A stretch of 64,000 bases of DNA from Octopus bimaculoides (lineage: Eukaryota), in the NCBI RefSeq assembly GCF_001194135.2, contig NC_068998.1:15550142-15614141 (forward strand), written 5' to 3'. Numbering within the stretch: the first letter of the stretch is position 1; each line of letters begins with the position of its first letter. This document shows positions 18,601 through 64,000 of this stretch, one piece after another. The notes beneath the pieces were generated by a model, which saw only the letters and a list, made by a program, of their open reading frames with translations, was not told the DNA's origin and did not search any database. The translations under genes were made by a program, and so were the position numbers.

Positions 18601-21600
18601 TGAAAAATAGTTGTATAAATTTTAAATAGAAACCAGTAAGTGCAGATCAATAATCAATGATTAAATGTATACAAATTTAATGAGTAGTTTTTGTGATACA
18701 TTTTAGATTAAAACACTTAGCAGCAGATATATTTTTTAATTATTAAATGTGTTAACTCTGTTTGCTGGGCAACAGTGATTTATGTGCAATTAATTCTGAA
18801 TGTAGATTTAATTACAATAAACAAAAATAGTATAATTTAAGTAATACTGATGGCTAAAATATATTTTCTGAAAACAGAAGATAGATATAATATAGAGAAC
18901 AGTGTTTCCCCAGACTGAAATGTAGTTTATCAAATGTATTTTATAAATTATATGAAATCTAGTTCTAAGAATATTTCTATTTTTAAAGATATGATAATCA
19001 TTGAATTTTTTTCTTTTCTTTTCATTTTCCCAGTTTAGCATTTTCATATATATTTCTTTATTTCTTCTTACTTCCCTTTTATTCTGTCCTTAATTTTCTA
19101 TAGTTGTAATCAACCAGTATCTTTATTTTTGATTGTAGCCCTGAAGGTAAAACACTTGAAGTTAAGAAATCTTCCTATAAAAAGGTAAATTTCCTGATCA
19201 CTAAAACTTATTATCCAGTAGATGAAATAACTGAGTTAAAACACACCTGCATTTTAATCAACTAATACTTGTGAGTTTGATTCCCAGATCAGGCTGTGTG
19301 TTGTGCTCTTGAGCAAGACACCTTATTTCATGTTGATCTAGTTCACTCAGCTGTAGAAATGAGTTGCAATGTCACTGGTACCAAGCTGTATCGGCATTTG
19401 CTTTTCCCTCAGTAGTGTGGAGAGGGGAGGCTGGTATGCATGGGCAACTGCAGGTCTTCCATAAACAACCTTACTCAGATTGTTCCTTGGAAGGTAACTT
19501 TCTGGGTGCAAACCCATGGTCTTTCATGATTGAAGAGGGTCTTTACTCTTTTGTTTACCCTTTTATTTGTTGCCAGTAACTACAACCATTTATTATGCTT
19601 GTTTTCCTTTCTCTGTTATATTCTTAGTGTTACTGTTAATAACAGTTAAATATGTCTTAAAATTACATAAAGTTAAAATGTGCTGTGTGCCTTTTGTAGA
19701 AAGTATTCTGAGCAAGGTGGGTTTAGGTGTACTAAAGAAGTATCGGACTGTGACATGCAATGCCATAAGTAAGATGTAATAAAAAGATGTTTGTCTTGTA
19801 CACTCTATCCAACTCTTGTCAGTATAAGAAACCATATATTAACCCATTAGCATTTAGATTACTGTATCATGTAATCCCTATTCATTCACATTGTTTTGAA
19901 TTATCTTGTAATTGCAAGATTTTGATGATGTGGTTGTTTATTTTTAGTATGACATTGTAAGGTAGGTGTAAGAGGCCAAATCCACTCAGTTTGAATATAA
20001 AACAGAATATTTGGGCCAAATATAACCAGTTTAAATGCTAAAGGGCTTAAATCAACAATGATGAGGAAATAGAACTTCTATAGCTGCCTTTGTGATGTTT
20101 CCTGTTGACACTGAAATGAAATATGTGATTACCATAAACACTTAAAAATTTAAACTCCTTAGTTTGATGAAGTTAATTAAACTTACATGGACTTGGGAAA
20201 TAAATTACAGTTTGAAATTCAGTATGAAATTGTTTCTTTATGAATCAGAATTAAGGGGATTTTTTTTTTATCACCTTTGCTGTATGATGTCTTCTATTTT
20301 CATTTAATTTTGTGAATAAAAAAAATCATTTTACTCTTTCTCAGCTTTCAAAATTTCTCCAAGAAATGCAAGATAATGATTTTATAAAAGTGGCCCCAAA
20401 AAGTAAAGGTGTTGATGAAATAATATGGTTAAATAAAGACCATGCAAAGTAAGATTACAACTCAATTTTTATTTTCTTTATAGTTTTAAAATTTAATTAG
20501 TAATTTTCTTGTATAAGGTGATGGTTTAAAAAAAAAAAACACTTGATGCCTAACTTTTTTTTTGTGCATTTAAGACAAGCTATCATACCTAAAAAAAACC
20601 AGACTTCAATCTAAGTTGGGACTATATTGGTTATGCTATCATATAATGTTTGGTTGTGTGAAATGTAGCCTAATACAGCATGTTTCAGTTTATACTTCTT
20701 TGTATAGTTGACTTGTGCAATGCAAATTGCATAATTCATTTGCAGAGCAAACTATACTCACCTTCCTGTGAATAGGCCTATAAAAATTGTCTTGGTTTTG
20801 AGATTTCAGGATGGTTATTGTAAAACTACCAGTAGAAGGTTGAGTAAATGATATATTAATGTATCTGCTAATGTATCATAGTGCTTCTGGGTTATACACT
20901 TTCTTCTCCTTGATCTCATTGCATGAAGCTGTTGCATGTTAATACCAGATCAACTCAGAATCCTCCACGTGATAGTCTGGTGTGCTATTCATCATGAGAT
21001 TTAGTTCTCATCAGCTTAACGTCATAAAGCTAGTACTGGCCTTCAGATATTATTTTAGGGTACAAAAGGTTTTTACTTATTGAAAAACTGATGGGAGACT
21101 ATAAGCTTCATAAAACTATCATTGGCCTTCAGATACTTTTTAGAGGTTTGAAAGGTGTATTTACTTTGAGAAAACTGGAGATTGTAAGCTCCAGGCAGTT
21201 TTTCTTGAATTGAAACTTGATAGTTGAATATATTATAAAGATCTTGTGGATATCCACATTATTTTTGATTAAATATCAAAGGTAAGGTTAAGAAATGATT
21301 AAAGACAAGGTATGTGAAAGAAGATAAATTTTGCAACCATATCTTCTTGGAAAGATGACAAAGTAACACTTAAAATCTCTGATTATCTCAGAAAAATGTA
21401 TTCAAAATGCATGCTCAGCATTTCTTGCTCTTTACATCAGAGCTTTATGTCTATTAGTATTTGTATGCTGCAATGAGGACGTTAGGAAACCTTTGTGGAC
21501 TAAAGAGAAGATATTTGGTACTGAGGTTATATTGGAGATTTATTTTCAATAAAAATTTCTATATTTTTGTAGACTTAGAGATTTGATTGTTCCTGATATT

Positions 21601-24600
21601 ACGGAACAAGCAAAAGAGTCTGAGGATGATTTTCAACTACCCAAAATTACTGAAATACGGATTGTGACAGCAGCAGTTTTGCCAGTTTTGAAGGAATATG
21701 GTTATGAGTAAGTTAGATGTTTAATTTTATTTCAATCGGTGTCAATAGTATCTCCTTTCTCTCTGGACACTGCTGAAGAAATTCAAGAGCCAGTTGGTGT
21801 CTTTAAACTAAGTGGTTAAGTGCATTTTCAAATCTCTTATTATCTTAAGATAATATGAGATTTGGCAGTTATTTCTAGCAGGTTGAACCACTGTGTAGGG
21901 TTCCATTACCACCACCATTGACTGGAGAAAGAGAGTTTCTGATATGTGTGTGTCTGAATCTATTGAGCTGTGGAAAATGTTTGATCAAAAGTGAATTCAA
22001 ATTCACTGATCTAGTTTCTTGAACATTCAAAGTTATCATCAAAGTCATAGTTTCAACGTCCACCTTTCCATTCTTGTATAGATTGGATGAAGCTTAATAA
22101 GGCAAATTTTCCAAGGTTGAACATCCTTCCTGTCATCAACCCTCACTTGTTATCAAGCAAGGTTTCCTGTAGCCAGACATGATTTTTCAGAATATTGGAA
22201 ACAAATAATGCATCTTCGATGATAGTGACACTCATTCACAAATATGTGATTTCAAGACAAAGATTCACCCTGCCACACACACACACTTTTTTTAAAGTTT
22301 TTCAGAAATATAGGACACAATTCCAGTCATGCTTCTGTTTTTTAACAAGTAAGAAATTCATCAAATGTGTGTTAATTTTTTTTCTATTTGAATACAATTG
22401 TATTTTTACTTTAACTAATCAATAGTTTTTCTTCTAATTTTAACAATGCCAGCAAAGGAAGTACTATGCTACCAGCAGATGTGAGAACTGTCATAACAGA
22501 TTATGTAAAAAAAAACCAATTACCGTTTGATAAAAGCCAAAGGTAAGAATAAACATAGAAGGTGGGCAATAATCACACACCAAAACATTTCATATTTTAT
22601 TTATATCATTATTATTATTATGTTGTTGTTGTTCATTCATTTTGTTCATCATGTATAAGTATGTGTGAAATCATCATTATTTTTTATTTTATTCAATTTC
22701 AATAAAATTGAAGCATGTCTTTGACAATTCTGGAGCATATTGAAGTTTTTTGGGTGGTTTCCCCTGAATTCTAATTTCCAAATTCTTTAACTATGGACAT
22801 GCTTTATGGACCTCCATCCAGCCATCATCTCTGCCCACTGTTCTTGGGAGGACCGATGGGATAGTCCTCAGGTACCTCCTCCACAGAGTGCTTTCAGAAA
22901 AAACTGCCATTAAACTTCCCAATTGGATTCCTAAGCGTGACCAATTGAGGCTTTGGGTATCATCCAACCATCTCATTCTTGGTCCGCCACTAGGTCTCCT
23001 GCTGGTTGGCTTGACTTGAAGAATTTGTCTTCTGGTTTCTTTATATGACATTTTAATCACATGTAAAAAGCATCCAGTCAACACAGTAAAGTGGTTGGCA
23101 TTTGGAAGGGCAGCCAGCTGTAAAAACCATGCCAAAACAGACCTCGCTGCTGCAGGTTCCACATAAAAAGCACTCAGTCCACTCTGTTGGGTGCTTGATG
23201 TTAGGAAGGGCATCCAGCCATAAAAACCCTGCTAAAACAGATAGTGAAGCCTGCTCTTTTCCCTCCAAGTGATACATCCTGTAACTCTGCAGTTTTGAGG
23301 ACTGGTGGAATACTAGTCTCTTACTTGAAAACACTCAGAGGGCATTTTATCATCATCATACATCCATTTTCCATGCTAGCATGGGTTGGATGGCTTGACA
23401 GGAGCAGGCAAGCTTGAAGACTGTGCCAAGCCCCATTGTCTGCTTTGGCATGATTTTTATAGCTGGATGCCCTTTCTAATGCCAACCACTCTAGAGATTG
23501 GACTTGGTATTTTTCATGTGGCACCAGCACTAGCGAGGTATTTCTTTTCCCTATTCTACCTTCTTTGTTAATGGTGAAGGTGACTGCAACAACAGCTGCC
23601 ACCAACACCAACACCACCATTATCATCTACCTAGGCTTCTTAGCATGATAGTAAAGCAAAATCTTCTTGTTGCAGTATGGTGCAGTTGGATCCTGTTTTA
23701 GCGGAAATTGTTCTGCGTTCTGGTGAAAACAACAAATTTTACTTAGGCTGGAAAGACCTGATATCAAGGTAAGATTAACACCATACACACACACATATCA
23801 CCATTCCTCACTATCTACCTACTGTGAACTTTGATGTAAAATGAGTGGCTTTGTGATCCTGTCATTCAAGTTTCATGTTTAAAACCATTTATATTTAAGG
23901 ATTGAGTGCAAGCGTGGCTGTGTTAAGAAGTTTCCTCCCCAACCATACAGTCTCGGGTTCAGTCTCACTGCATGACACCTTGGGGCAAGTGTCTTCTACC
24001 ATGGCCTTTGATCAACCAAATCCTTGAGTGGAGCTGGCAGATGGAGACTGACAGAAGCCCGTTTTGTGTATGTCTGTATGTATGTGTGTGTTTTACTGTC
24101 TCCTTGCCTTGACTTGTTGAGATAGTTGTTAATGAGTGTCATCATTATTGTAAGCAATGTCCTTCATTTTCAATCTTCTTTGAAAACATCTCTGTTCATG
24201 GAGAATATTATCACATTACTTGGAAGCAAGTGAGGGTTGGAGACAGGAAGAGCATCTGGTTGTAGAAAATCTGCCTCAGCAAATTGTCTGACCCGTGTGA
24301 ATATGAAAAGTGGATGTTAAAATGATGATGATTAGAGTCATGTGATCATATGACCAACCAGGCTAGTCACAATGTGTCTTTTGCATTGTTTTAGCCTTCA
24401 AATGATGCTGGCTAGGTGAGCAGGCCAACATTCCCTCCTGATCGATAGGGGTACAGGAGTAACATGAAATGAAGTGTTTTGCTCAAGAACACAATGTGCT
24501 GCCCAATCAGGGAATTGAGCCCACGATCTAGCAGTCGTGAGTGCAATAGCCTAACTATTAGGCCTTACACCTTCACTGTAATTTGAGTAGTAGACTCATT

Positions 24601-38300: not shown

Positions 38301-41300
38301 AAATACATATATGACACATACTTCCTTCCAAGAGTGTAATGTACTGAAGCACTTGAAATTTTTTGAAACACACAAGTTTTAATACCTTACATCCATCCTG
38401 CCTATTGAGTAAGCATTTGTAATTTAGATAATCCAGACTAATTTATTTTTTAAGAATACAAGGCTAGCCTGTATTGCTTCTAAACCATACATTGTTTAGT
38501 CATATGAGTGACCAGCCCTATGATAAAACAACATTCCATCTACAAAATGATGCTCGTCTTTTTGCAAATCTAAGATTACAATATTCAACACACAACTTTT
38601 AAAAAGACAGTAGTGTGGGATTTTTTTTTTTTTTTTTGTGTGTGGTTTATTTCTAGCTGATTAAGAGACTATGTAGAAGCTTCACAAGTTGGCTAGATGC
38701 AATTTCAAATGGTTTAATATAAAATCTAGTCACAATGGAAATCTAAACCAGAATTTAAATGCACTTCATATTGTTATCTAACAGAAATGAAATGAAGTGG
38801 AGATGAAAATCTTGCGAGAGTTTCATCTATTCTGATTAAGTTGTGAAATACCTAAGACTTCAAATTATTTCTTTGCTAATAATGGTTAAAAATATTTAGC
38901 AATTAGAAAATAAAGAAATTTTACTGACTCGGATATAATCATTTTACAATAAATTTGAAATATTAACCCCTTTTTTAACCATATTTATGTTGAAATATAC
39001 TACCCCTGTCTCAACTTTGTAAATAGTGAAGAATTTATTAACTTTGTTATTATTAAGCTGGTGTCTGGAATACAAATCAACATGAAATTTTGATGGAGGT
39101 TTTTAATTTAGACCATTTTAAAACTGTGAATTTGCATCATAGCACCAGGGGTAGTTTCAAGCAGGATGGTATCAAAAGGGTTAAGGAAGATAAGCGTTTT
39201 TAGCAATTTTAATTTTCAATTTACAGTCTCCACTGCCACTACCCTTATCACTAACCTAGGCATGTTTAATGATGAACAACATCATATCTGGTTCTATATT
39301 TAAGAGATGAGGAATTATTTACATTATTTACATTTGACGGATATTTGTCCTCATCTTGTTTGTTGTTGCATATGGCGTAGTGGTTAAGAGCGCGAGCTAC
39401 TAACCCCAAGATTCCGAGTTCGATTCACGGCAGCGACCTGATTAATAATAATAATATAATAATAGTAACATCGTTAGGAATGAGAACCCAGGTTCGAAAT
39501 TTCCCCAAGACACCTGACGAAGGCTGGAGGGTATATCAGCCAAAACGTTGTGTTAACAAACAAGATGAGGACAAATATCCGTCAAATGTAAATAATGTAA
39601 CATCATATCTGTACTTGATCTTACCACAATCACATCCTTTCCTTCAAGTTGCTCCTTATTGACACCTGCTACCCTCTCTTACCAGCAAAAAATGATGTTC
39701 TTTCCATCACTGCCTCTCTCCCCCATTATATTATTCCTCTTTTCACTCCAATTTATCTTATTACCCTCTGAGTTCTGCTTTGAAGGATATGAGACAACAT
39801 TGAGTAATGAGAGCTAGCCTGGCAGGTACAAAGCAACCTGATTAGTGTTAATGCCATAAAATATATAAAGTTGTATCTAAGCATAGAAACCATTCCAAAA
39901 AATGGAATGGTAGGAAAAAGACAGCCCTCCAATCTGTCTATGATGGCAGTAGCTCACTGGGACCATCACACAAAATACAGATGTAAAATAATGCTAAAAT
40001 ATTTCACCTCTTTCAAATAGGAGAGAAACATTTTAGTTTTATTATATAAAGTAAATATTTAAATGGAGTCAAAAGCCAGTGTCAGTCAGTAATAGTTTTA
40101 GTAATATTTTACGGTCAAACATGATAAAAGGGAGTAAAATTAAAAAAGTAAGTTTAAAGGATGAGACAAATGAAAAAATATAACTTACCATCACATTTAT
40201 CACATATTATATCTCTAGTGATAGATAACTTTCTTGTTGCTCCATTGTATAACTCTTTCAAAGAAACTTTAAGTTGATGTACAATGTCTTTAACTTTAGA
40301 TGGCGTACTACGTCTAGCATGTCCGCCAAAAAACATATCAAAAATGTCCATAGCAGAATGGAACTCAAATCCAGTACCCCCTGCCCCACCTCCTTTAATT
40401 GCTTCTTCTCCACCTTGATCATAGATTTCTCTTTTCTTGGGCTCACTTAGTACTTCATAAGCTTGACTGATTAATTTGAACTGAAAAAGAAATATTTCCA
40501 AAGAGTAACTTCAAAACTTGAAATTAATTCTGAGAATATTTTGAAAATCTCATAAGGTATGCTATAAAAATACTCTTTAGCTTCCTCAAGTTTTAATTAA
40601 GAGATATTACTAGTCTTAAAAATATCAAGATAATCCAATGCTCTCTTCCATGCCCAACTGAAAGGAAACATCACTCATCTGGCCAAATCTCTGAATTAGA
40701 TTTCAGAACTGTCTAACCTTGATTTCTTTATACAGGAGTTGAAACAGTGAAAAATATATACATAGTGACAAAAGTCAATAAGCATAAAGAGGTACAAAAT
40801 TACAATTATCAAATCTGTGCAGGTTTCATGAGCTAAGATTAAATATCAAGACATTTATACATCTTTAAAAAATTTATTCAAAAGATGACAAACTTTTGAA
40901 TGAAAAATAAGTGCTAGAAAATTTTTTAATAGAAATTATCTACACGAGGCAATTATTTTAAAAGAAATATCACTGCAAATGCTAAATTTGAAATATTTTA
41001 ACCAATGCAAGGTTTTTTTACTCTCAGAAGCAAGACTTTAACTCCAACATTTAGGGATTTGAATATGATCTTTTAGGTGTATAAAAGTTTGGTAAGATAT
41101 GAGTCACTTTGTGCTGATATATAATAAAGAAAAAAAACTACAGCAGTGACATGCAATAATTGAATGGTTGAAAGCATAGACATGAGTTCAACAAAAACTG
41201 ATTGTTATTTGCTGTCCCAGCTGCCAGTACAAGAGAATTAAAATTTGAAAATAAAACGTTTACCCATCAACTTTTACATTGAGTACCTTTGAATATTATG

Positions 41301-47338: not shown

Positions 47339-48779
47339 GTACAAGACAGAATTTGCTGGGGATTTTCCTCTGCATGAGGAGTAGATAACCACCATATCTA
47401 TGATCAGCTTCTTTCAGAGTCTATCTGCATAAGATACTTGCCTTATGTGCTGGGCAGTGGGACTGAACCCAAGACCACATAGTTAGGAAGTAAACTTCTT
47501 ACCCACACTGTCACACCAAAAATCTTTCATTTTTTTTCTTTTTCTTCCAGAAAGAGAGTGTTATTTCCTTATGATTAAAATGTATAGGAAAAGGCTATTA
47601 TTTTCTTCAAATTTCACTTTTGATATTTTTTTTGAAATTCGAAATATTTTGAAATTTACCAAGCTAGAAATAGTAATATTTATATTACCAAGACCTTAAA
47701 CTCACTTTAGATCCAACTGTCTAAGTGTTTAAAGCTTTTGTTACCTTATTTGTGTTGAAATACACTGCCTTTGTTTCAATTAATTTTTAAAATAATGAAG
47801 AATTTAATAAAACAGTTTTGTCATTTATTAGCTGGTAAACATAAATTAACATGAAATTTTGATGAAGGTCTTAATTTAGATCACTCTAGAATAAAAAGTT
47901 TATATCATCATCTGGTTTCACCAGTCCTCAGTCAAATCGTCCAACCCATACTAGCATGGAAAGTGGACGTTAAGCGATGATGATGATCCAAGGGTGATTT
48001 TATGTTGATTAGTAACAGAAGCTTTCTGCATTCAAACTAGATGGCATCAAGAGGTTACAGCATCTGGCTGACACATTTTGCTATATCTGTAGCCAATTTA
48101 TTTAGACAATAATGAAAACATGCTGTGTGGCAACATCTGGTAAAATGTATGAGGTATAGAAAGCATATTTTAGTATGGCTATTGGGGATCAAGACAAATT
48201 CTAGACACTTCATTTCACCTGTTAGTACAGTAAAAAAAAAAAAAAAAAATTCAAGACAGTGGTTCTCAACTATTTTTTGCCTATGAACTACTTTGATTAT
48301 TATTTTACTCTGGTGGACCTCATAACCTCTCAATGTTTAAAAACTAGTTTTATAGATGTTTCTTTCAAAATTCCCATTTGGTTTTTCAAACATTAACTTG
48401 TGGAAACTGAACTATGTAAAACATTAAAGAAAGAAACCCAGCTGTTTTTTTCCAATAAATACATCTAAATTAAAATTTTTTCATAGACCTTTAATATACT
48501 ACTGTGTGTACTCAATTTACTATTTTGCTTGTGTGAAACCCCCTCCCCAGTTAAAGTGTTGGGCTCACAGTCATGAGGTAGTGAGTTCAATTCCCTGACC
48601 GGGCTGTGTGTTATGTTCTTGAGCAAGACACTATTTCACATTGCTCCAGTTCACTCAGCTGTAGAAAAGAGTTGCAATGTCACTGGTGCCAAGCAATATC
48701 CGGCCTTTGCTTTTCCCTTGGATAACATTTGTGATGTGGAGAGGAGAAGCCGGTATGCTTGGGCGACTGCCATAAACAA

Positions 48780-58514: not shown

Positions 58515-58682
58515 NNNNNNNNNNNNNNNNNNNNNNNNNNNNNNNNNNNNNNNNNNNNNNNATATGTATATATATATATATATGTATGTATGTATATATA
58601 TGTTATATATCATATATGTACATATACACATACATGCACATACACTCACACACACACATCATAAATATATAATATATATATA

Positions 58683-58803: not shown

Positions 58804-58809
58804 TTTATT
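58804..58809 (-). terminator. Candidate polyadenylation signal of the VWA gene
   Basis: AATAAA on the - strand about 80 nt after the stop. Confidence 0.55.
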
Positions 58810-58885: not shown

Positions 58886-59172
58886 TCAAATTGCTGGACA
58901 TCGTTTGCAAGGAGAGGTGTTGATGTGTTTCATCATACCGAGGAAATCATTACAGCTTCTGAAACTATACACATTATCTGTAGAACTATCAGAAGCTATA
59001 TCAGTTATTTTAATCTTTTTATTGGTAACCTGATCCCTCTTAATAATTGTTAATACAGACACGTGTGCAACAGAGCGCAGTTTCCATGCCTCTCTGTAGT
59101 ACGACGAACGGCATGTTGATCGGCCATCTGTTATTAGAAGCACATCGTATTTAATGCGTGTTTTGGATCCAT
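58886..59172 (-). CDS. VWA gene coding exon 4 (DGSKTRIKYDVLLITDGRS...CKRCPAI*)
   Basis: ctttgcag| acceptor, TGA 58888-58886. Confidence 0.88.
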
Positions 59173-62100
59173 CTGCAAAGAAATGATGAAAATATTAAAA
59201 ATCAAAAGAATTTATTAAAAAAATAAATAAAAAGATAATAACACCGACACAGGAATGGTAGTGTGATTTAGAAAGTCTCTTTGCAACCATATGTTTTTGG
59301 GTTCAGTCCCACAAGTGCCTTGACCAATGCCTTCTGAGTGAATTTGGTAGTTGAAAACTGTGTAATATANNNNNNNNNNNNNNNNNNNNNNNNNNNNNNN
59401 NNNNNNNNNNNNNNNNNNNNNNNNNNNNNNNNNNNNNNNNNNNNNNNNNNNNNNNNNNNNNNNNNNNNNATATACTTGAAACCGCTTGAAAACTGATGTT
59501 GGTTTGTTTACATATTTGTAACTTAGCAGTTTGGTGAAAGAGACCAATAGAATAAGTACTAGACTTTAAAAAATGTATTGGAGATTAACTGTTTGTCAGA
59601 AAAAATTGTTTAAAAAAACCTCCAAAAACTTCAAGGCAGTGTCCCAACATAACCTCAGTCCAGTGACTGAACACACAAAAGATAAAGATAACATCAACTT
59701 GATATGGCTGCAATAGTTTTTAGAAAATATTGGCAAGCTTATTATGAAGCCATGTAAGAACTGACCTGTGTACTTATCAATGTGAGTATATGCTTTCTTC
59801 AACAGAGAAGTTACACAACTGACTCCATCATGTCCATTCAGCTTATGGATGGCTTCTTTAAGTTGTTCAATGCTTTTTGTTTCTGAGTGATATTGCTTCA
59901 CATTGTCATTGTTCGTGATCAGCGTTAAAGAATGGACATCAACAGTATGGTCAAATGTACGGGTGCTGCTTTTTGGCAGACACATATTGTCGACCATTAA
60001 AGTAAGACTCTCTTTAATGTGAGATAATTCATCTGGAGACATCTGCAAGATCATTAAATGTATAAATCAAAATAAAAAATAATAATAAAATCTTTTTATC
60101 ATATTTAATGTAAATACATTAGTCAAAGGCAAGTTACTGTTTGTATTCATCCAGAGATAATATCTCTTATGAATGTGCTCTATTTGAAAACACAGTATAT
60201 GTGTAGCTGTAAGTTTCTGTTTATTCTCAAATTCCTAATGTACTTTATATTTGTAAACCCAATAGTCAATATAACATAGTTTGTCATAAACATTTGTATT
60301 TTGTGGTTTTTTGTCATTTTAGTTACAAAATAAGTAAATTAATTCAACGGAATACACTGTCTGCAAGTCGTTGGGTACAGCATATTATCCTCCATTTTCT
60401 AATTGCTATATAAATTTAGGGTGAAATAACTGCCCTTTTACCAGCACCCACTTATTACACTTGGTATAACACTAGTGTAACAATAATTGGTTACCCTAAC
60501 TCTCTTGCATTATATATGTACATAAAAACGTGTATGTGTGTGTGTGTATATGAAAAAGAGAGAGAGAGAGAGACAGACAAACATAGAGAGGAGATTTTAA
60601 ATGGTTTATAGTCTTTAGGACTTTGTGACTTGATAAAAAATGTTGATACTCTAGTTAGTTACAAAGGCATCCCTATAAAAAGACAATCTGATAACACAAA
60701 TGTGGTTTGCCTTACATTTGTTCTATTTAAAGCACTACCTTTTCCCCTCATCATTTAGAACTACATTCCTACGATTCTTATTTTCCCCTTTATGTTCATA
60801 GGATTCGTATGGTTGGTTTTGAAACTGTGAATACCAAGGCATGGGTATGGCTCTGACGTTAAGAAGCTCAAAATGTAACTATGTGGTTTTGGGTTTGGCT
60901 GTGACACCTTGTGCAAGTGTCTTCTACTATAGCCCTAGGCCAACCAATGCCATGTGAGTGAATTTGGTAGACTGAAACTATATGGAAGCCCATTGGGCTT
61001 CCATGTAGTGTGTGTGTGTGTGTGTGCACGCGTGCGTGTGTGTGTGTGTGTGTGTGTGCGCATGTGTGTGTGTATGTGCGTGTATAATGTCTCACCCATG
61101 CCAGCATGGAAAAAAAGATGTTAAACAATGATGTTGATGATGATGGTAAATGTATATTTATATAATAAACGTATATATATATATATATGTATATGCATAT
61201 CTATATATATCTATATATATCTATATATATACGTATATATATGTATATATATATGTATATGTACGTGTATACACACACACATACACATGCGTACACACAC
61301 ACACACACACAACACATACACACATGTCTTTATGTTTGAACACCACCACCACTTAACAACCGGTGTTGGTTTGTCAGTGTTCCCATAACTCAGCAGTTCA
61401 TCAAGAGACCAAAGAAATGAATATCAGACTTCAAGAAAAAAATGTAGTATTGGGGTTGATTTGTTTGACTAACCTCTTCAGAGCAGTGCCCCAGGATGGC
61501 TGCAGTCCAATTTTTGAAACAAGTTCAAAATTAAAAGAAAACTTTCTTACCTGTGAAGAAAGGTCAAGAAGAAACAATTTACTCCTTTTGCCTTCTTGAT
61601 AATTATTGCCAAAATTGGCAAAGTTCTTCAGAAATCGGTCTTCAAATCGGCAACACATTTCTTTGAATGCTCTTGCAAAATCTATCATAAAAAATAAAGA
61701 TATGAAATTTCACAAGAAGTATAGATTTTACTGTGAAAATATTGAGTATGGTATTCTTTTGCTAGTTAAATAAAAAAATTTTACACTAAATATAAAAATA
61801 AATTATAAACACAGGGACAGGCATAATTATGTGGTTAAGAAACTAGCTTTGTAACCATGTGGTTTCAGGTTCCATCCTACCATACAGTATCTTGGGCAAG
61901 TATCAGAAGAAGAAAAAGAAAACGACAATAATGATGACAATTATACCTATTCCCCTGATTTGAAGTGTCAGATATAAAACTAGATTAATAAAAAATGTAA
62001 CTCTTTTGCCCAAACTGACTCATTTTTGATATCATTGAAAAATGATATCAGAAAGGTAAAAAAATAAAAGAGAAGTCATCGTTTTAAGTAAGATAGAAAG

Positions 62101-62651
62101 AAAGATGTAGAATGATGATGATGTATACAGGTCTGTATTATTTGGACAAATATGTTTTCTTCTTTTTTTTAAGACAGTAAATTGTGATTTGAGGGCGATT
62201 TGGTTGTTATTTCTAGCTGGTTGACCACATAGAAGTTCCCTTGTTGGCTTTAGGATTAAAGTTGTTGCTGGGAAATGGAATGAATGTCACTGAACTTATT
62301 TAACTTCTGCCCATTCCTGCTGAAGTTGAAAGGGTTAATACTCTATTGCAGTACATACTTCTGCTAATGAAAGGTAAATTAATTCTAATTAACACATCTG
62401 TGATGATCATCATCTTCATTTAGCATCCACTCTTCTATGCTTGTATAGGTCAGACAGAATTTGTTGAGGCAGATTTTCGACAACTGGTTGCCATTCCAGT
62501 TGTCAACAGTCATCACCTGTTTTCAGGTAAGGCAAGATTTTCCCACACGTTTTTTGCAGAAGACTGGAAACGAACAACATTGGTTGTATGATGGCAATGT
62601 TTGTTTATGACCATGATGTCAAGACATGGGTATGCACAAACATACACACAT

Positions 62652-62685
<34 letters not shown>

Positions 62686-63885
62686 ATACACATACACACA
62701 TGCATACACATGTATACACATACACACATGCATACACAGACTCATTTACACAAACACATGCATACATATGCACATGCGTATACACACTCACATGGACACA
62801 TGCACACAAATACACTCATATGCTTACACATGCACACACACACATGCATACATACATGCACACATGAATACACACACATGCATATACACACTCACATGCA
62901 CACACACACACACACACATGTATACACATACACACATGCATACACATACACACTTGCATACACAGACTCATATACACACACAAACACATGCACATGCATA
63001 CACACACTAACATGGACACATGCACACAAATACACTCATATGCTTACACACATGCATACATACATGCACACATGAACACACACACATGTATATACACACT
63101 CACATGCACACACACACACATATGCATACATACGCACATGGATACCCACATTCATTCGCACACACATTCATTTAATCACAACTGTACCTTAGATATAAAT
63201 AAACAAAATAATTAATGATATAAAATCAATGCTTCTCAACCATTTTTTACCTATTGACCCCTTTAATTCCCATTTTACTCAGATGGATCCTCTTAGCCAT
63301 TTAATGTTTAAAAAATCCTATTATATTTTTATAATTAAATATTATTTGGAAGTGTATAAAAAAATTTCCAAAAAAAATTTCCAAAATAATTTGTGTATCA
63401 TAGAAATATAAGCAATTTATAGCACATAAATTTTAACACCAAAATCTTATATGAAACCCCAAGTGCCATATGGAACCTGGTTGAGAATCACTGATATAAA
63501 TAATTGTCGACTGATTGATTGATTGATTGATTGGTTGATTTTTCTGTTTACCTTCAAAAAAGTTATGTCCATGATATTGAGGCTCATAAGACTTGTGTTG
63601 AGCTGCATATTCAGGCTGCTTCCATAATCTAAAATAGCCCCACTCACCATTTAAAGAGAAATCTCCAAAGAATGAACCCTGTCGTGGAAAACTGGGATAT
63701 TGCCGGAAAGATTTCTGATGTGCAACCATAGGAGAATAAGAGTTATTTCTGCGACCATAATTCCACAAACCATTGTCATTCCAGCCATCATATTGGGGGT
63801 CTTGATTTCCATAGCCCAAATAATCTTCACCAACAGATAGCGTGTGTGAGATGAGTGTTATTGTAATAATTCCCAGAGTCCACAT
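58886..63885 (-). CDS. Secreted VWA-domain protein (signal peptide + aromatic/G/N-rich region + single VWA domain), 4 coding exons, 342 aa
   Basis: Exons 63885-63552, 61681-61551, 60042-59766, 59172-58886 (1029 nt; phases 1, 0, 1; donors gtaaac, gtaaga, gtcagt). Hydrophobic N-terminus MWTLGIITITLISHTLSVG; VWA hallmarks LFLLDLSSQ, LKEAIHKL..DGVSCVTSLLKKA, VLLITDGRS, ITDIAS..DNVY; AATAAA at 58809-58804. Confidence 0.88.
59766..60042 (-). CDS. VWA gene coding exon 3 (MSPDELSHIK...IDKYT)
   Basis: cttgcag| acceptor, AG|gtcagt donor. Confidence 0.88.
61551..61681 (-). CDS. VWA gene coding exon 2 (DFARAFKEMCC...LFLLDLSSQ)
   Basis: atgatag| acceptor, CAG|gtaaga donor. Confidence 0.88.
62625..63165. 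repeat. Degenerate (CA)n/(CATG) microsatellite with a ~220-bp higher-order duplication
   Basis: catggacacatgcacacaaatacactcatatgcttacaca at both 62791 and 63011. Confidence 0.85.
63552..63885 (-). CDS. VWA gene coding exon 1 (signal peptide and low-complexity region)
   Basis: ttccag| acceptor at 63901-63900, ATG 63885, GAAG|gtaaac donor. Confidence 0.85.
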
Positions 63886-64000
63886 TATGTTAGAATTATC
63901 TGGAACAAAAAGAACATATATATATATATATATATATATAGCTAGTAATTATAGACCAATCATGTGCTTACCATTGGTGTGGAAGCTGTTAAGAGGAATG

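Follow-up and report, generated by a model that had tools for sequence, protein, structure and literature searches.

What kind of protein does LOC106881823 of Octopus bimaculoides encode, and what has become of the metal site of its single VWA domain? The gene lies on the minus strand of a window of 64,000 nucleotides (the whole stretch of DNA that was analyzed: contig NC_068998.1 of RefSeq assembly GCF_001194135.2, positions 15,550,142 to 15,614,141 of the forward strand; the chromosome is CM046618.1 of GCA_001194135.2), and coordinates given here without a record label are those of the window. A preliminary description, made from the letters alone, had read it as a secreted single-VWA protein with a remodeled metal-ion-dependent adhesion site (MIDAS). 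We find that LOC106881823 is an intact, real, single-copy gene, and that its product is an ordinary but lineage-restricted, uncharacterized member of the VWA family, not a new kind of system. Taken as a whole, the best explanation, which we favor with moderate confidence, is a secreted coleoid VWA adaptor that would bind through a non-canonical MIDAS and carry a sticky tail tuned by splicing.

Gene structure and protein architecture

Joining the four exons in phases 1/0/1, with three of three introns GT-AG, yields a 1029-nt open reading frame (ORF) of 342 amino acids (aa). The four-exon, phase-consistent model proposed earlier was in this way reproduced from the raw sequence, and its product matches RefSeq XP_052830463.1 residue for residue ("uncharacterized protein LOC106881823", Octopus bimaculoides; 100% identity over 100% of the length). 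The parts of the gene are as follows.

58886..63885, minus strand: entire coding span of LOC106881823, 4 exons, 342 aa; rebuilt spliced ORF equal to XP_052830463.1
63883-63885 and 58886-58888, minus strand: start codon ATG and stop codon
63552..63885, minus strand: exon 1, putative signal peptide and disordered aa 19-111; donor AAG|GTAAAC, phase 1
63832-63885, minus strand: putative signal peptide, aa 1-18 (within exon 1), from N-terminal hydrophobicity
63552..63647, minus strand: optional 96-nt segment, aa 80-111, GEWGYFRLWKQ...; with the internal same-phase donor ATG|GTGAGT, exon 1 stops at 63648
61551..61681, minus strand: exon 2, conserved pre-domain helix (DFARAFKEMCCRFEDRFLKNF) and strand beta1; phase 0 donor CAG|GTAAGA
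61551-61565, minus strand: remodeled MIDAS motif D151-L-S-S-Q155, the last codons of exon 2, from the alignment of relatives
59766..60042, minus strand: exon 3, VWA alpha1 to alpha4 including C176; donor ACAG|GTCAGT, phase 1; secondary structure from the AlphaFold model
59815-59820, minus strand: S230-C231 pair at the MIDAS-Thr position (exon 3), from the alignment
59173..59765, minus strand: intron 3, holding the assembly gap 59370-59469; flanks match O. sinensis intron 3
58886..59172, minus strand: exon 4, VWA beta4 to the C-terminus, with T262-D263-G264, C268, C321, the C336-x-x-C339 tail and the stop
59126-59128, minus strand: D263 codon (exon 4)
58949..61574, minus strand: Pfam VWA match, aa 148-322, split by introns 2 and 3 (PF00092, E 3.5e-10)
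58804..58809, minus strand: AATAAA hexamer, a probable polyadenylation signal about 77 nt past the stop, from reading the sequence

In intron 3, 296 nt separate the 100-N gap from the donor and 197 nt separate it from the acceptor. The O. sinensis ortholog (L010, free of N) has four equivalent exons with identical splice-site sequences and an intron 3 of 1725 nt, whose two ends match the O. bimaculoides flanks at 90% and 85% identity; in place of the gap O. sinensis has ~1247 nt (L010 8097-9343), which contain microsatellite sequence and an interspersed repeat. The exon 3/4 junction (..DKYT|DGSK..) is uninterrupted and carries no extra residues in the O. sinensis and Argonauta hians gene models and in intron-free Sepia mRNA contigs. 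Because the flanks match and the junction is contiguous in the orthologs, the gap is an intronic repeat, the frame is secure and no exon has been lost. Further copies of the interspersed repeat occur at 19271-19552 and 48559-48770. The N gaps of the window (~15.06-15.62 kb, 33.27-33.74 kb, 54.98-55.75 kb, 58516-58561 and 59370-59469) have (TA)n or (CA)n microsatellites at their borders in at least four cases; the breaks in the assembly thus go with simple repeats.

Three methods agree on the single VWA fold claimed in the preliminary description, which had also named PF00092 as the profile to check. The Pfam match covers aa 148-322 with 40.8 bits, above the gathering score of 23.8, and places the protein in the VWA superfamily; VWA and VWA_2 are the only Pfam matches of the whole protein, and aa 19-141 match no Pfam family at E<=1. 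AlphaFold, supplied with a 121-sequence alignment (the 4 cephalopod sequences and 117 further VWA relatives), predicts one domain in the alternating strand-helix order of VWA folds with a predicted local distance difference test (pLDDT) score of ~80-94 across aa 100-340. In the model a helix at 109-132 precedes the domain, aa 1-91 are predicted to be disordered (pLDDT <50), and the chain ends 9 residues past the fold. The four-sequence cephalopod alignment alone gave a mean pLDDT of 32.9 and no usable model. Foldseek returned 309 matches in the PDB at E<=0.001, with template-modeling scores of ~0.7 to single-domain targets and 12-19% identity; the best (factor B/C2, mussel PTMP1, vWF A3, and the integrin alphaL and alphaM I domains) all lie at E ~1e-9, and none stands out. 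The modeled domain thus has the alternating beta-alpha, Rossmann-like fold of solved VWA and integrin I domains and can be superposed on them.

Against PDB sequences, a mixed molluscan VWA profile came closest to collagen VI N-domains, both PTMP1 domains and integrin alphaM/X. A cephalopod-only profile had no PDB match at E<=0.01, which shows the strong divergence of the cephalopod family, and a single-sequence phmmer search of the PDB gave chance-level matches only.

Ahead of the domain, the composition of aa 19-111 (24% Y/W/F, 12% G and 17% N+Q) bears out the aromatic, Gly-, Asn- and Gln-rich region of ~90 aa described earlier. The octopus N-terminus is hydrophobic and reads as a putative signal peptide (MWTLGIITITLISHTLS|VGEDY), with clearer counterparts in Argonauta (MQLLGVTAAVVTLLFSHSLS|VGEDY), Sepia (MLWKISTGLVTMLVLQQAVC|EDEN) and the gastropod relative Patella. 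Since hydrophobic N-termini are found in every ortholog and in Patella, and since the domain is of an extracellular type rich in an even number of cysteines, the protein is probably secreted.

Coleoid distribution and alternative splicing

A word-seeded search returned four clusters only. Two belong to Octopus (Octopus spp. and the short isoform of O. sinensis), one to Argonauta hians (70% identity), and the fourth (56%) is a 306-aa product of RNA-seq assemblies, three of whose run accessions appear in papers on Sepia esculenta. An exhaustive hidden Markov model (HMM) search of 1.84 billion representative proteins gave 10 matches at E<=0.001, among them five exon-sized decapodiform fragments, one Lingula multi-VWA protein and three gastropod hypotheticals (Littorina, Batillaria and Lottia); a Patella protein joins the gastropod set. 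The decapodiform genomic fragments end exactly at octopus intron positions (P0013 reads ..DLSSQ|V.., and P0010 and P0011 begin MSP(D/E)E). The coleoid orthogroup is marked by an invariant LLDLSSQMS, seven cysteines, introns after DLSSQ and before D248, and an internal GTGAGT donor, and VWA domain conservation between Octopus and Sepia is 57-58%. On the evidence of these matches, orthologs of LOC106881823 are confined to coleoid cephalopods (Octopus, Argonauta and Sepia).

The earlier view of a lineage-specific gene is borne out by this solely coleoid set and by the mere 10 matches among 1.84 billion representatives; no characterized 1:1 ortholog emerged either, and every relative found is uncharacterized. 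Literature searches on LOC106881823, LOC118766263, the protein accessions, six diagnostic peptides and Lottia 160181 found nothing. Upstream of the VWA gene, O. bimaculoides (L008 785-1051, ~9-9.2 kb past the right end of the window) and Argonauta hians (L009 2830-4294) both have an LSm-domain gene (..LGLVVCRGTSVVSICPADGMEAIPNPF..), and this shared neighbor supports 1:1 orthology within octopods. A suggested tandem array did not materialize: when the 64 kb window and a further 10 kb upstream were searched with the protein (tblastn), only the gene itself came up and no paralog, nor did the 90% and 50% cluster searches bring up another protein from O. bimaculoides.

Between O. bimaculoides and O. 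sinensis, the ratio of non-synonymous to synonymous substitution rates (dN/dS) is 0.25 overall, 0.21 for the VWA part and 0.57 for the tail, from the small number of 34 changes in all (17 synonymous and 17 non-synonymous). These values indicate purifying selection, which on such counts is weaker on the tail. As a separate observation, ENA eukaryotic assemblies contain a large family of small VWA proteins, ~100 single-VWA, Cys-rich sequences of 190-290 aa with a canonical MIDAS (P0025-P0048 and others; consensus ..CFNC...CAC...).

Exon 1 contains an internal donor, ATG|GTGAGT at 63648, 96 nt upstream of the canonical donor and in the same phase. Its use drops 32 aa (aa 80-111) and yields a product matching the annotated O. 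sinensis isoform X2 (310 aa, as compared to 342 aa for X1); the O. sinensis site (L010 ~1232-1247) is identical to that of O. bimaculoides. In Sepia, the long (349 aa) and short (317 and 306 aa) transcripts differ by exactly 96 nt, from AATG|GTGAGTGG (L011 ~370-466). The same-phase alternative donor AATG|GTGAGTGG is therefore conserved from octopus to cuttlefish, a new observation here. In both, the invariant G-E-W codons GGT GAG TGG also form the GTGAGT donor, a strong 5' splice site; this is a tidy case of dual coding constraint on residues and splice site. In Argonauta the internal donor was not found as an exact 12-mer, though the G-E-W residues are kept. Sepia RNA-seq assemblies hold the short isoform on 40 contigs (L001-L006) and the long isoform on 2 (L011), so the 342-aa type of product, which is the RefSeq choice for O. 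bimaculoides, may be a minor one.

The gene is expressed in cuttlefish hatchlings: both Sepia isoforms come from poly(A)+ RNA of pooled whole Sepia esculenta hatchlings. Searches of octopus RNA-seq contigs for the exact proteins P0001 and P0005 returned genome records only, those for the X2 isoform returned none, and the LOC106881823 protein is absent from the octopus skin-mucus proteome supplements.

Could the gene be decaying or mis-annotated, a pseudogene or a set of exons joined by chance across a gap? The assembly is gap-rich, with one gap inside the gene, and the exact full product is recorded from no RNA-seq contig of O. bimaculoides. Set against this are the intact ORF, the same exon boundaries in O. 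sinensis (free of N) and Argonauta, the dN/dS of 0.25, the spliced poly(A)+ Sepia transcripts and the octopus-cuttlefish conservation of the VWA domain. RefSeq models and Sepia mRNA support the junctions. We regard an artefact as very improbable and the explanation as effectively excluded.

The metal site, the cysteines and a proposed mechanism

In a VWA-only alignment and in the 121-sequence alignment, the MIDAS columns of LOC106881823 are D151-L-S153-S-Q155, S230 and D263. The five metal-site columns read D-S-S-T-D in 111 of the 121 sequences and 6 others are N-terminally truncated; D-S-Q-(S/N)-D is found solely in the 4 cephalopod proteins. Q155 is invariant in cephalopods, and the Asp of TDG is retained; at position 230 Octopus and Sepia have Ser and Argonauta has Asn. 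Over the heptad D-L-S-S-Q-M-S, Octopus and Sepia agree at every residue (100%). The protein therefore departs from the canonical D-x-S-x-S...T...D of the integrin alpha-I type: D151, S153 and D263 are present, 155 is Gln and 230 is Ser or Asn. Judged by these columns (111 canonical relatives as compared to 4 cephalopod proteins), the remodeling is lineage-specific and fixed across the octopus-cuttlefish split, and the residue assignments made earlier (DLSSQ for DxSxS, Ser for the loop Thr in DGVSC, and the TDG Asp kept) are right. Altered metal-dependent binding would follow from these residue changes.

A different reading of the same columns is that the MIDAS is retuned and still functional, the Gln155 amide oxygen and Ser/Asn230 holding a cation together with D151, S153 and D263, perhaps Ca2+ or Zn2+ and not Mg2+; the metal would then still bridge domain and ligand. 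Three of the five ligands, both Asp included, are invariant, the replacements are conserved polar oxygen donors (Q155 invariant, 230 Ser or Asn), the heptad is unchanged from Octopus to Sepia, and the mussel PTMP1 MIDAS is zinc-occupied according to the title of entry 4cn9. However, position 230 varies between Ser and Asn, which is unusual for a direct metal ligand, and the 111 nearest relatives all keep Ser and Thr, so that the change departs from a strongly constrained state. On balance we consider a retuned site possible and rather doubtful.

The O. bimaculoides protein has 8 Cys (121, 122, 176, 231, 268, 321, 336 and 339), the number counted in the preliminary description, whose "CC motif" did not survive comparison: C121 (61653-61655) is Ser in both O. 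sinensis and O. vulgaris, and only C122 of the pair is invariant, so the motif is not a conserved feature. The seven others (122, 176, 231, 268, 321, 336 and 339) are invariant in cephalopods. C231 immediately follows the MIDAS-Thr position and C268 lies five residues past the MIDAS Asp; the two occur together in 8 of 9 sequences, all from molluscs. This co-occurrence suggests a mollusc-specific disulfide between C231 and C268 that would join the MIDAS-Thr loop and the MIDAS-Asp loop. C176 is accompanied by a C-terminal Cys in 73 of 77 sequences. C321 is found in cephalopods only, its column holding Phe, Tyr, Ile or Leu elsewhere; as the conserved set is odd in number and this column is hydrophobic, C321 is probably the unpaired cysteine, buried and free.

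The favored account would run as follows. The protein would consist of a cleavable signal peptide, a disordered tail of ~90 aa rich in Tyr, Trp, Phe, Gly, Asn and Gln, and a short helix with a disulfide-stabilized VWA domain of the classical extracellular type (the class of collagen VI, PTMP1 and integrin alpha-I domains). Its ancestor may have resembled the present gastropod relatives, with a Mg2+-type MIDAS (DxSxS...T...D) and a C231-C268 loop staple. In the coleoid lineage two of the five metal ligands would have been replaced (Ser by Gln155, and Thr by Ser/Asn230) and then frozen. The domain would act as a protein-binding module that dispenses with canonical MIDAS metal bridging, as in metal-free VWA binders, and the aromatic tail may serve self-association or matrix attachment, with the alternative 5' splice site governing inclusion of the 32-aa GEW-x-F-x-LWKQ module.

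Several points weigh against this account. The octopus signal peptide is weak, with a Thr-rich core and no basic n-region; the O. bimaculoides RNA-seq assemblies searched contain no contig with the full protein; and the number of changes behind the dN/dS values is small. Octopus-Sepia identity is 70% in the three MIDAS-face loops and 55% in the rest of the domain, a difference that is not significant (Fisher p = 0.21) and so does not locate the binding face. Since metals can still be coordinated by the side chains of Gln and of Ser/Asn, the loss of metal dependence is putative. The putative disulfide pairs are deduced from co-occurrence only, and any tissue or ligand role of family members, such as the matrix, adhesive or gland role suggested in the preliminary description, is likewise putative.

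A bolder extension of the favored account would have the protein arise as a coleoid novelty and serve to build or cross-link an extracellular material peculiar to cephalopods, such as the chitinous sucker lining, beak or radula, the cuttlebone or stylet matrix, or the egg-case. The disordered tail would self-assemble or bind polysaccharide, the metal-independent, stapled VWA domain would bind a partner, and the donor would switch the 32-aa module. We consider this unlikely as it stands; if true, such a cephalopod-specific biomaterial component would be of interest to materials and evo-devo researchers.

VWA domains are among the commonest extracellular binding modules, and those that lack a working MIDAS are well known. 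O. bimaculoides alone is reported to have 111 VWA proteins (PMC11291548). Given that background, a further gene of this sort is unsurprising. Its value lies in a clean, single-copy, coleoid-only orthogroup with no characterized member, and in two constrained ligands that were replaced once and then frozen, a natural experiment on MIDAS retirement or retuning.

Neighboring features and comparison with known systems

Three further reading frames in the window deserve mention. An open exon at 40154-40501 (minus strand, the strand of the VWA gene) covers the last part of a J domain, then a linker rich in Gly and Phe, and then the first part of a DnaJ C-terminal domain, and looks like a DnaJ subfamily-A-like neighbor; its Pfam matches (DnaJ, E 1.4e-4; DnaJ_C, E 7e-3) are both below cut-off, the exon being partial. 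An ORF at 63842-64000 (plus strand, continuing to ~64126 beyond the window; '..NYRPIMCLPLVWKLL..') is antisense to the first codons and 5' flank of the VWA gene; a likeness to non-LTR reverse transcriptases is an impression only, and it has no Pfam match. A 140-aa ORF at 22791-23213 (minus strand; '..GGPRMRWLDD..') may, again as an impression, be a retroelement remnant, and Pfam gives no match to it.

The nearest non-cephalopod relatives of LOC106881823 are four gastropod VWA proteins, Lottia gigantea LOTGIDRAFT_160181, a Patella vulgata "collagen alpha-1(XII) chain" (372 aa), Littorina saxatilis V1264_015921 and Batillaria attramentaria BaRGS_005736, which match at E 1e-7 to 8e-5 against 1.84 billion proteins with 20-26% identity. 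They share the single VWA domain, C176, C231, C268 and a C-terminal Cys with the octopus protein, and Lottia has a phase-1 intron one codon off cephalopod intron 3. Unlike the octopus protein they keep the canonical DxSxS, Thr and Asp, and Lottia, unlike the cephalopods, has no intron after DxSxS; all four are uncharacterized. In place of the aromatic disordered tail, the Lottia, Patella and Batillaria proteins carry a Cys-containing WSxW N-terminus resembling a thrombospondin-type repeat, and the Littorina protein (245 aa) has a short N-terminus only. Profile-profile comparison detected no homology between the gastropod and cephalopod N-terminal regions. The idea that GEWGYFRLWKQ is a degenerate thrombospondin-type (WSxW) repeat is unsupported (hhalign probability 0.2%, 3 aligned columns).

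Among characterized molluscan proteins, PTMP1 of the mussel byssus (PDB 4cn8, 4cn9 and 4cnb) is likewise a secreted VWA protein. It ranks second in Foldseek (E 2e-9, 18-19% identity) and comes second among the solved sequences matched by the molluscan VWA profile (each domain ~6e-24 to 9e-24), and its C-terminal C-x-x-C is like the PCKRC of LOC106881823. PTMP1 has two tandem VWA domains, whereas LOC106881823 has one VWA stretch by Pfam and in the model; PTMP1 also lacks the aromatic disordered tail, and no orthology is evident. Pif and BMSP are secreted molluscan VWA proteins too, but they combine the VWA domain with peritrophin-A-type chitin-binding domains. Pfam finds no chitin-binding domain in LOC106881823, and no Pif/BMSP protein is among the nearest relatives in our searches; a single-VWA BMSP-family member has been reported in O. 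bimaculoides (PMC11291548).

The top Foldseek match is the VWA domain of complement factor B/C2 (E 1.4e-9, 12-16% identity), and this bears on another possibility, that LOC106881823 is a soluble haemolymph VWA protein acting as a humoral immune or clotting-type recognition factor, and not a matrix or adhesive protein. The Sepia transcripts, drawn from whole-hatchling libraries, could come from any tissue including haemocytes. Nonetheless, the likeness to factor B is no better than that to PTMP1, vWF A3, integrins or other VWA families, and the closest solved relatives by sequence profile are collagen VI and PTMP1. Pfam finds no CCP (Sushi), serine-protease (Trypsin) or other immune-type domain where factor B/C2 combines CCP, VWA and a trypsin-like protease. 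We judge an immune role to be improbable, and the secreted adaptor continues to be the preferred reading.

Collagen VI/XII, which gives the Patella and Lingula relatives their automatic name, has Gly-X-Y repeats and multiple VWA domains; LOC106881823 has no Collagen Pfam match. Because it lacks a chitin-binding domain, a second VWA domain, CCP and protease domains, and a triple helix, it is not a Pif/BMSP, PTMP1, factor B/C2 or collagen protein. Like LOC106881823, the vWF A1/A3 domains and the N-domains of collagen VI have a classical extracellular VWA fold (14-15% identity), but they sit in very large multidomain proteins. The vWF A domains have an N-to-C-terminal disulfide clamp and bind ligand with no functional MIDAS, and it is they that provide the working model proposed for LOC106881823.

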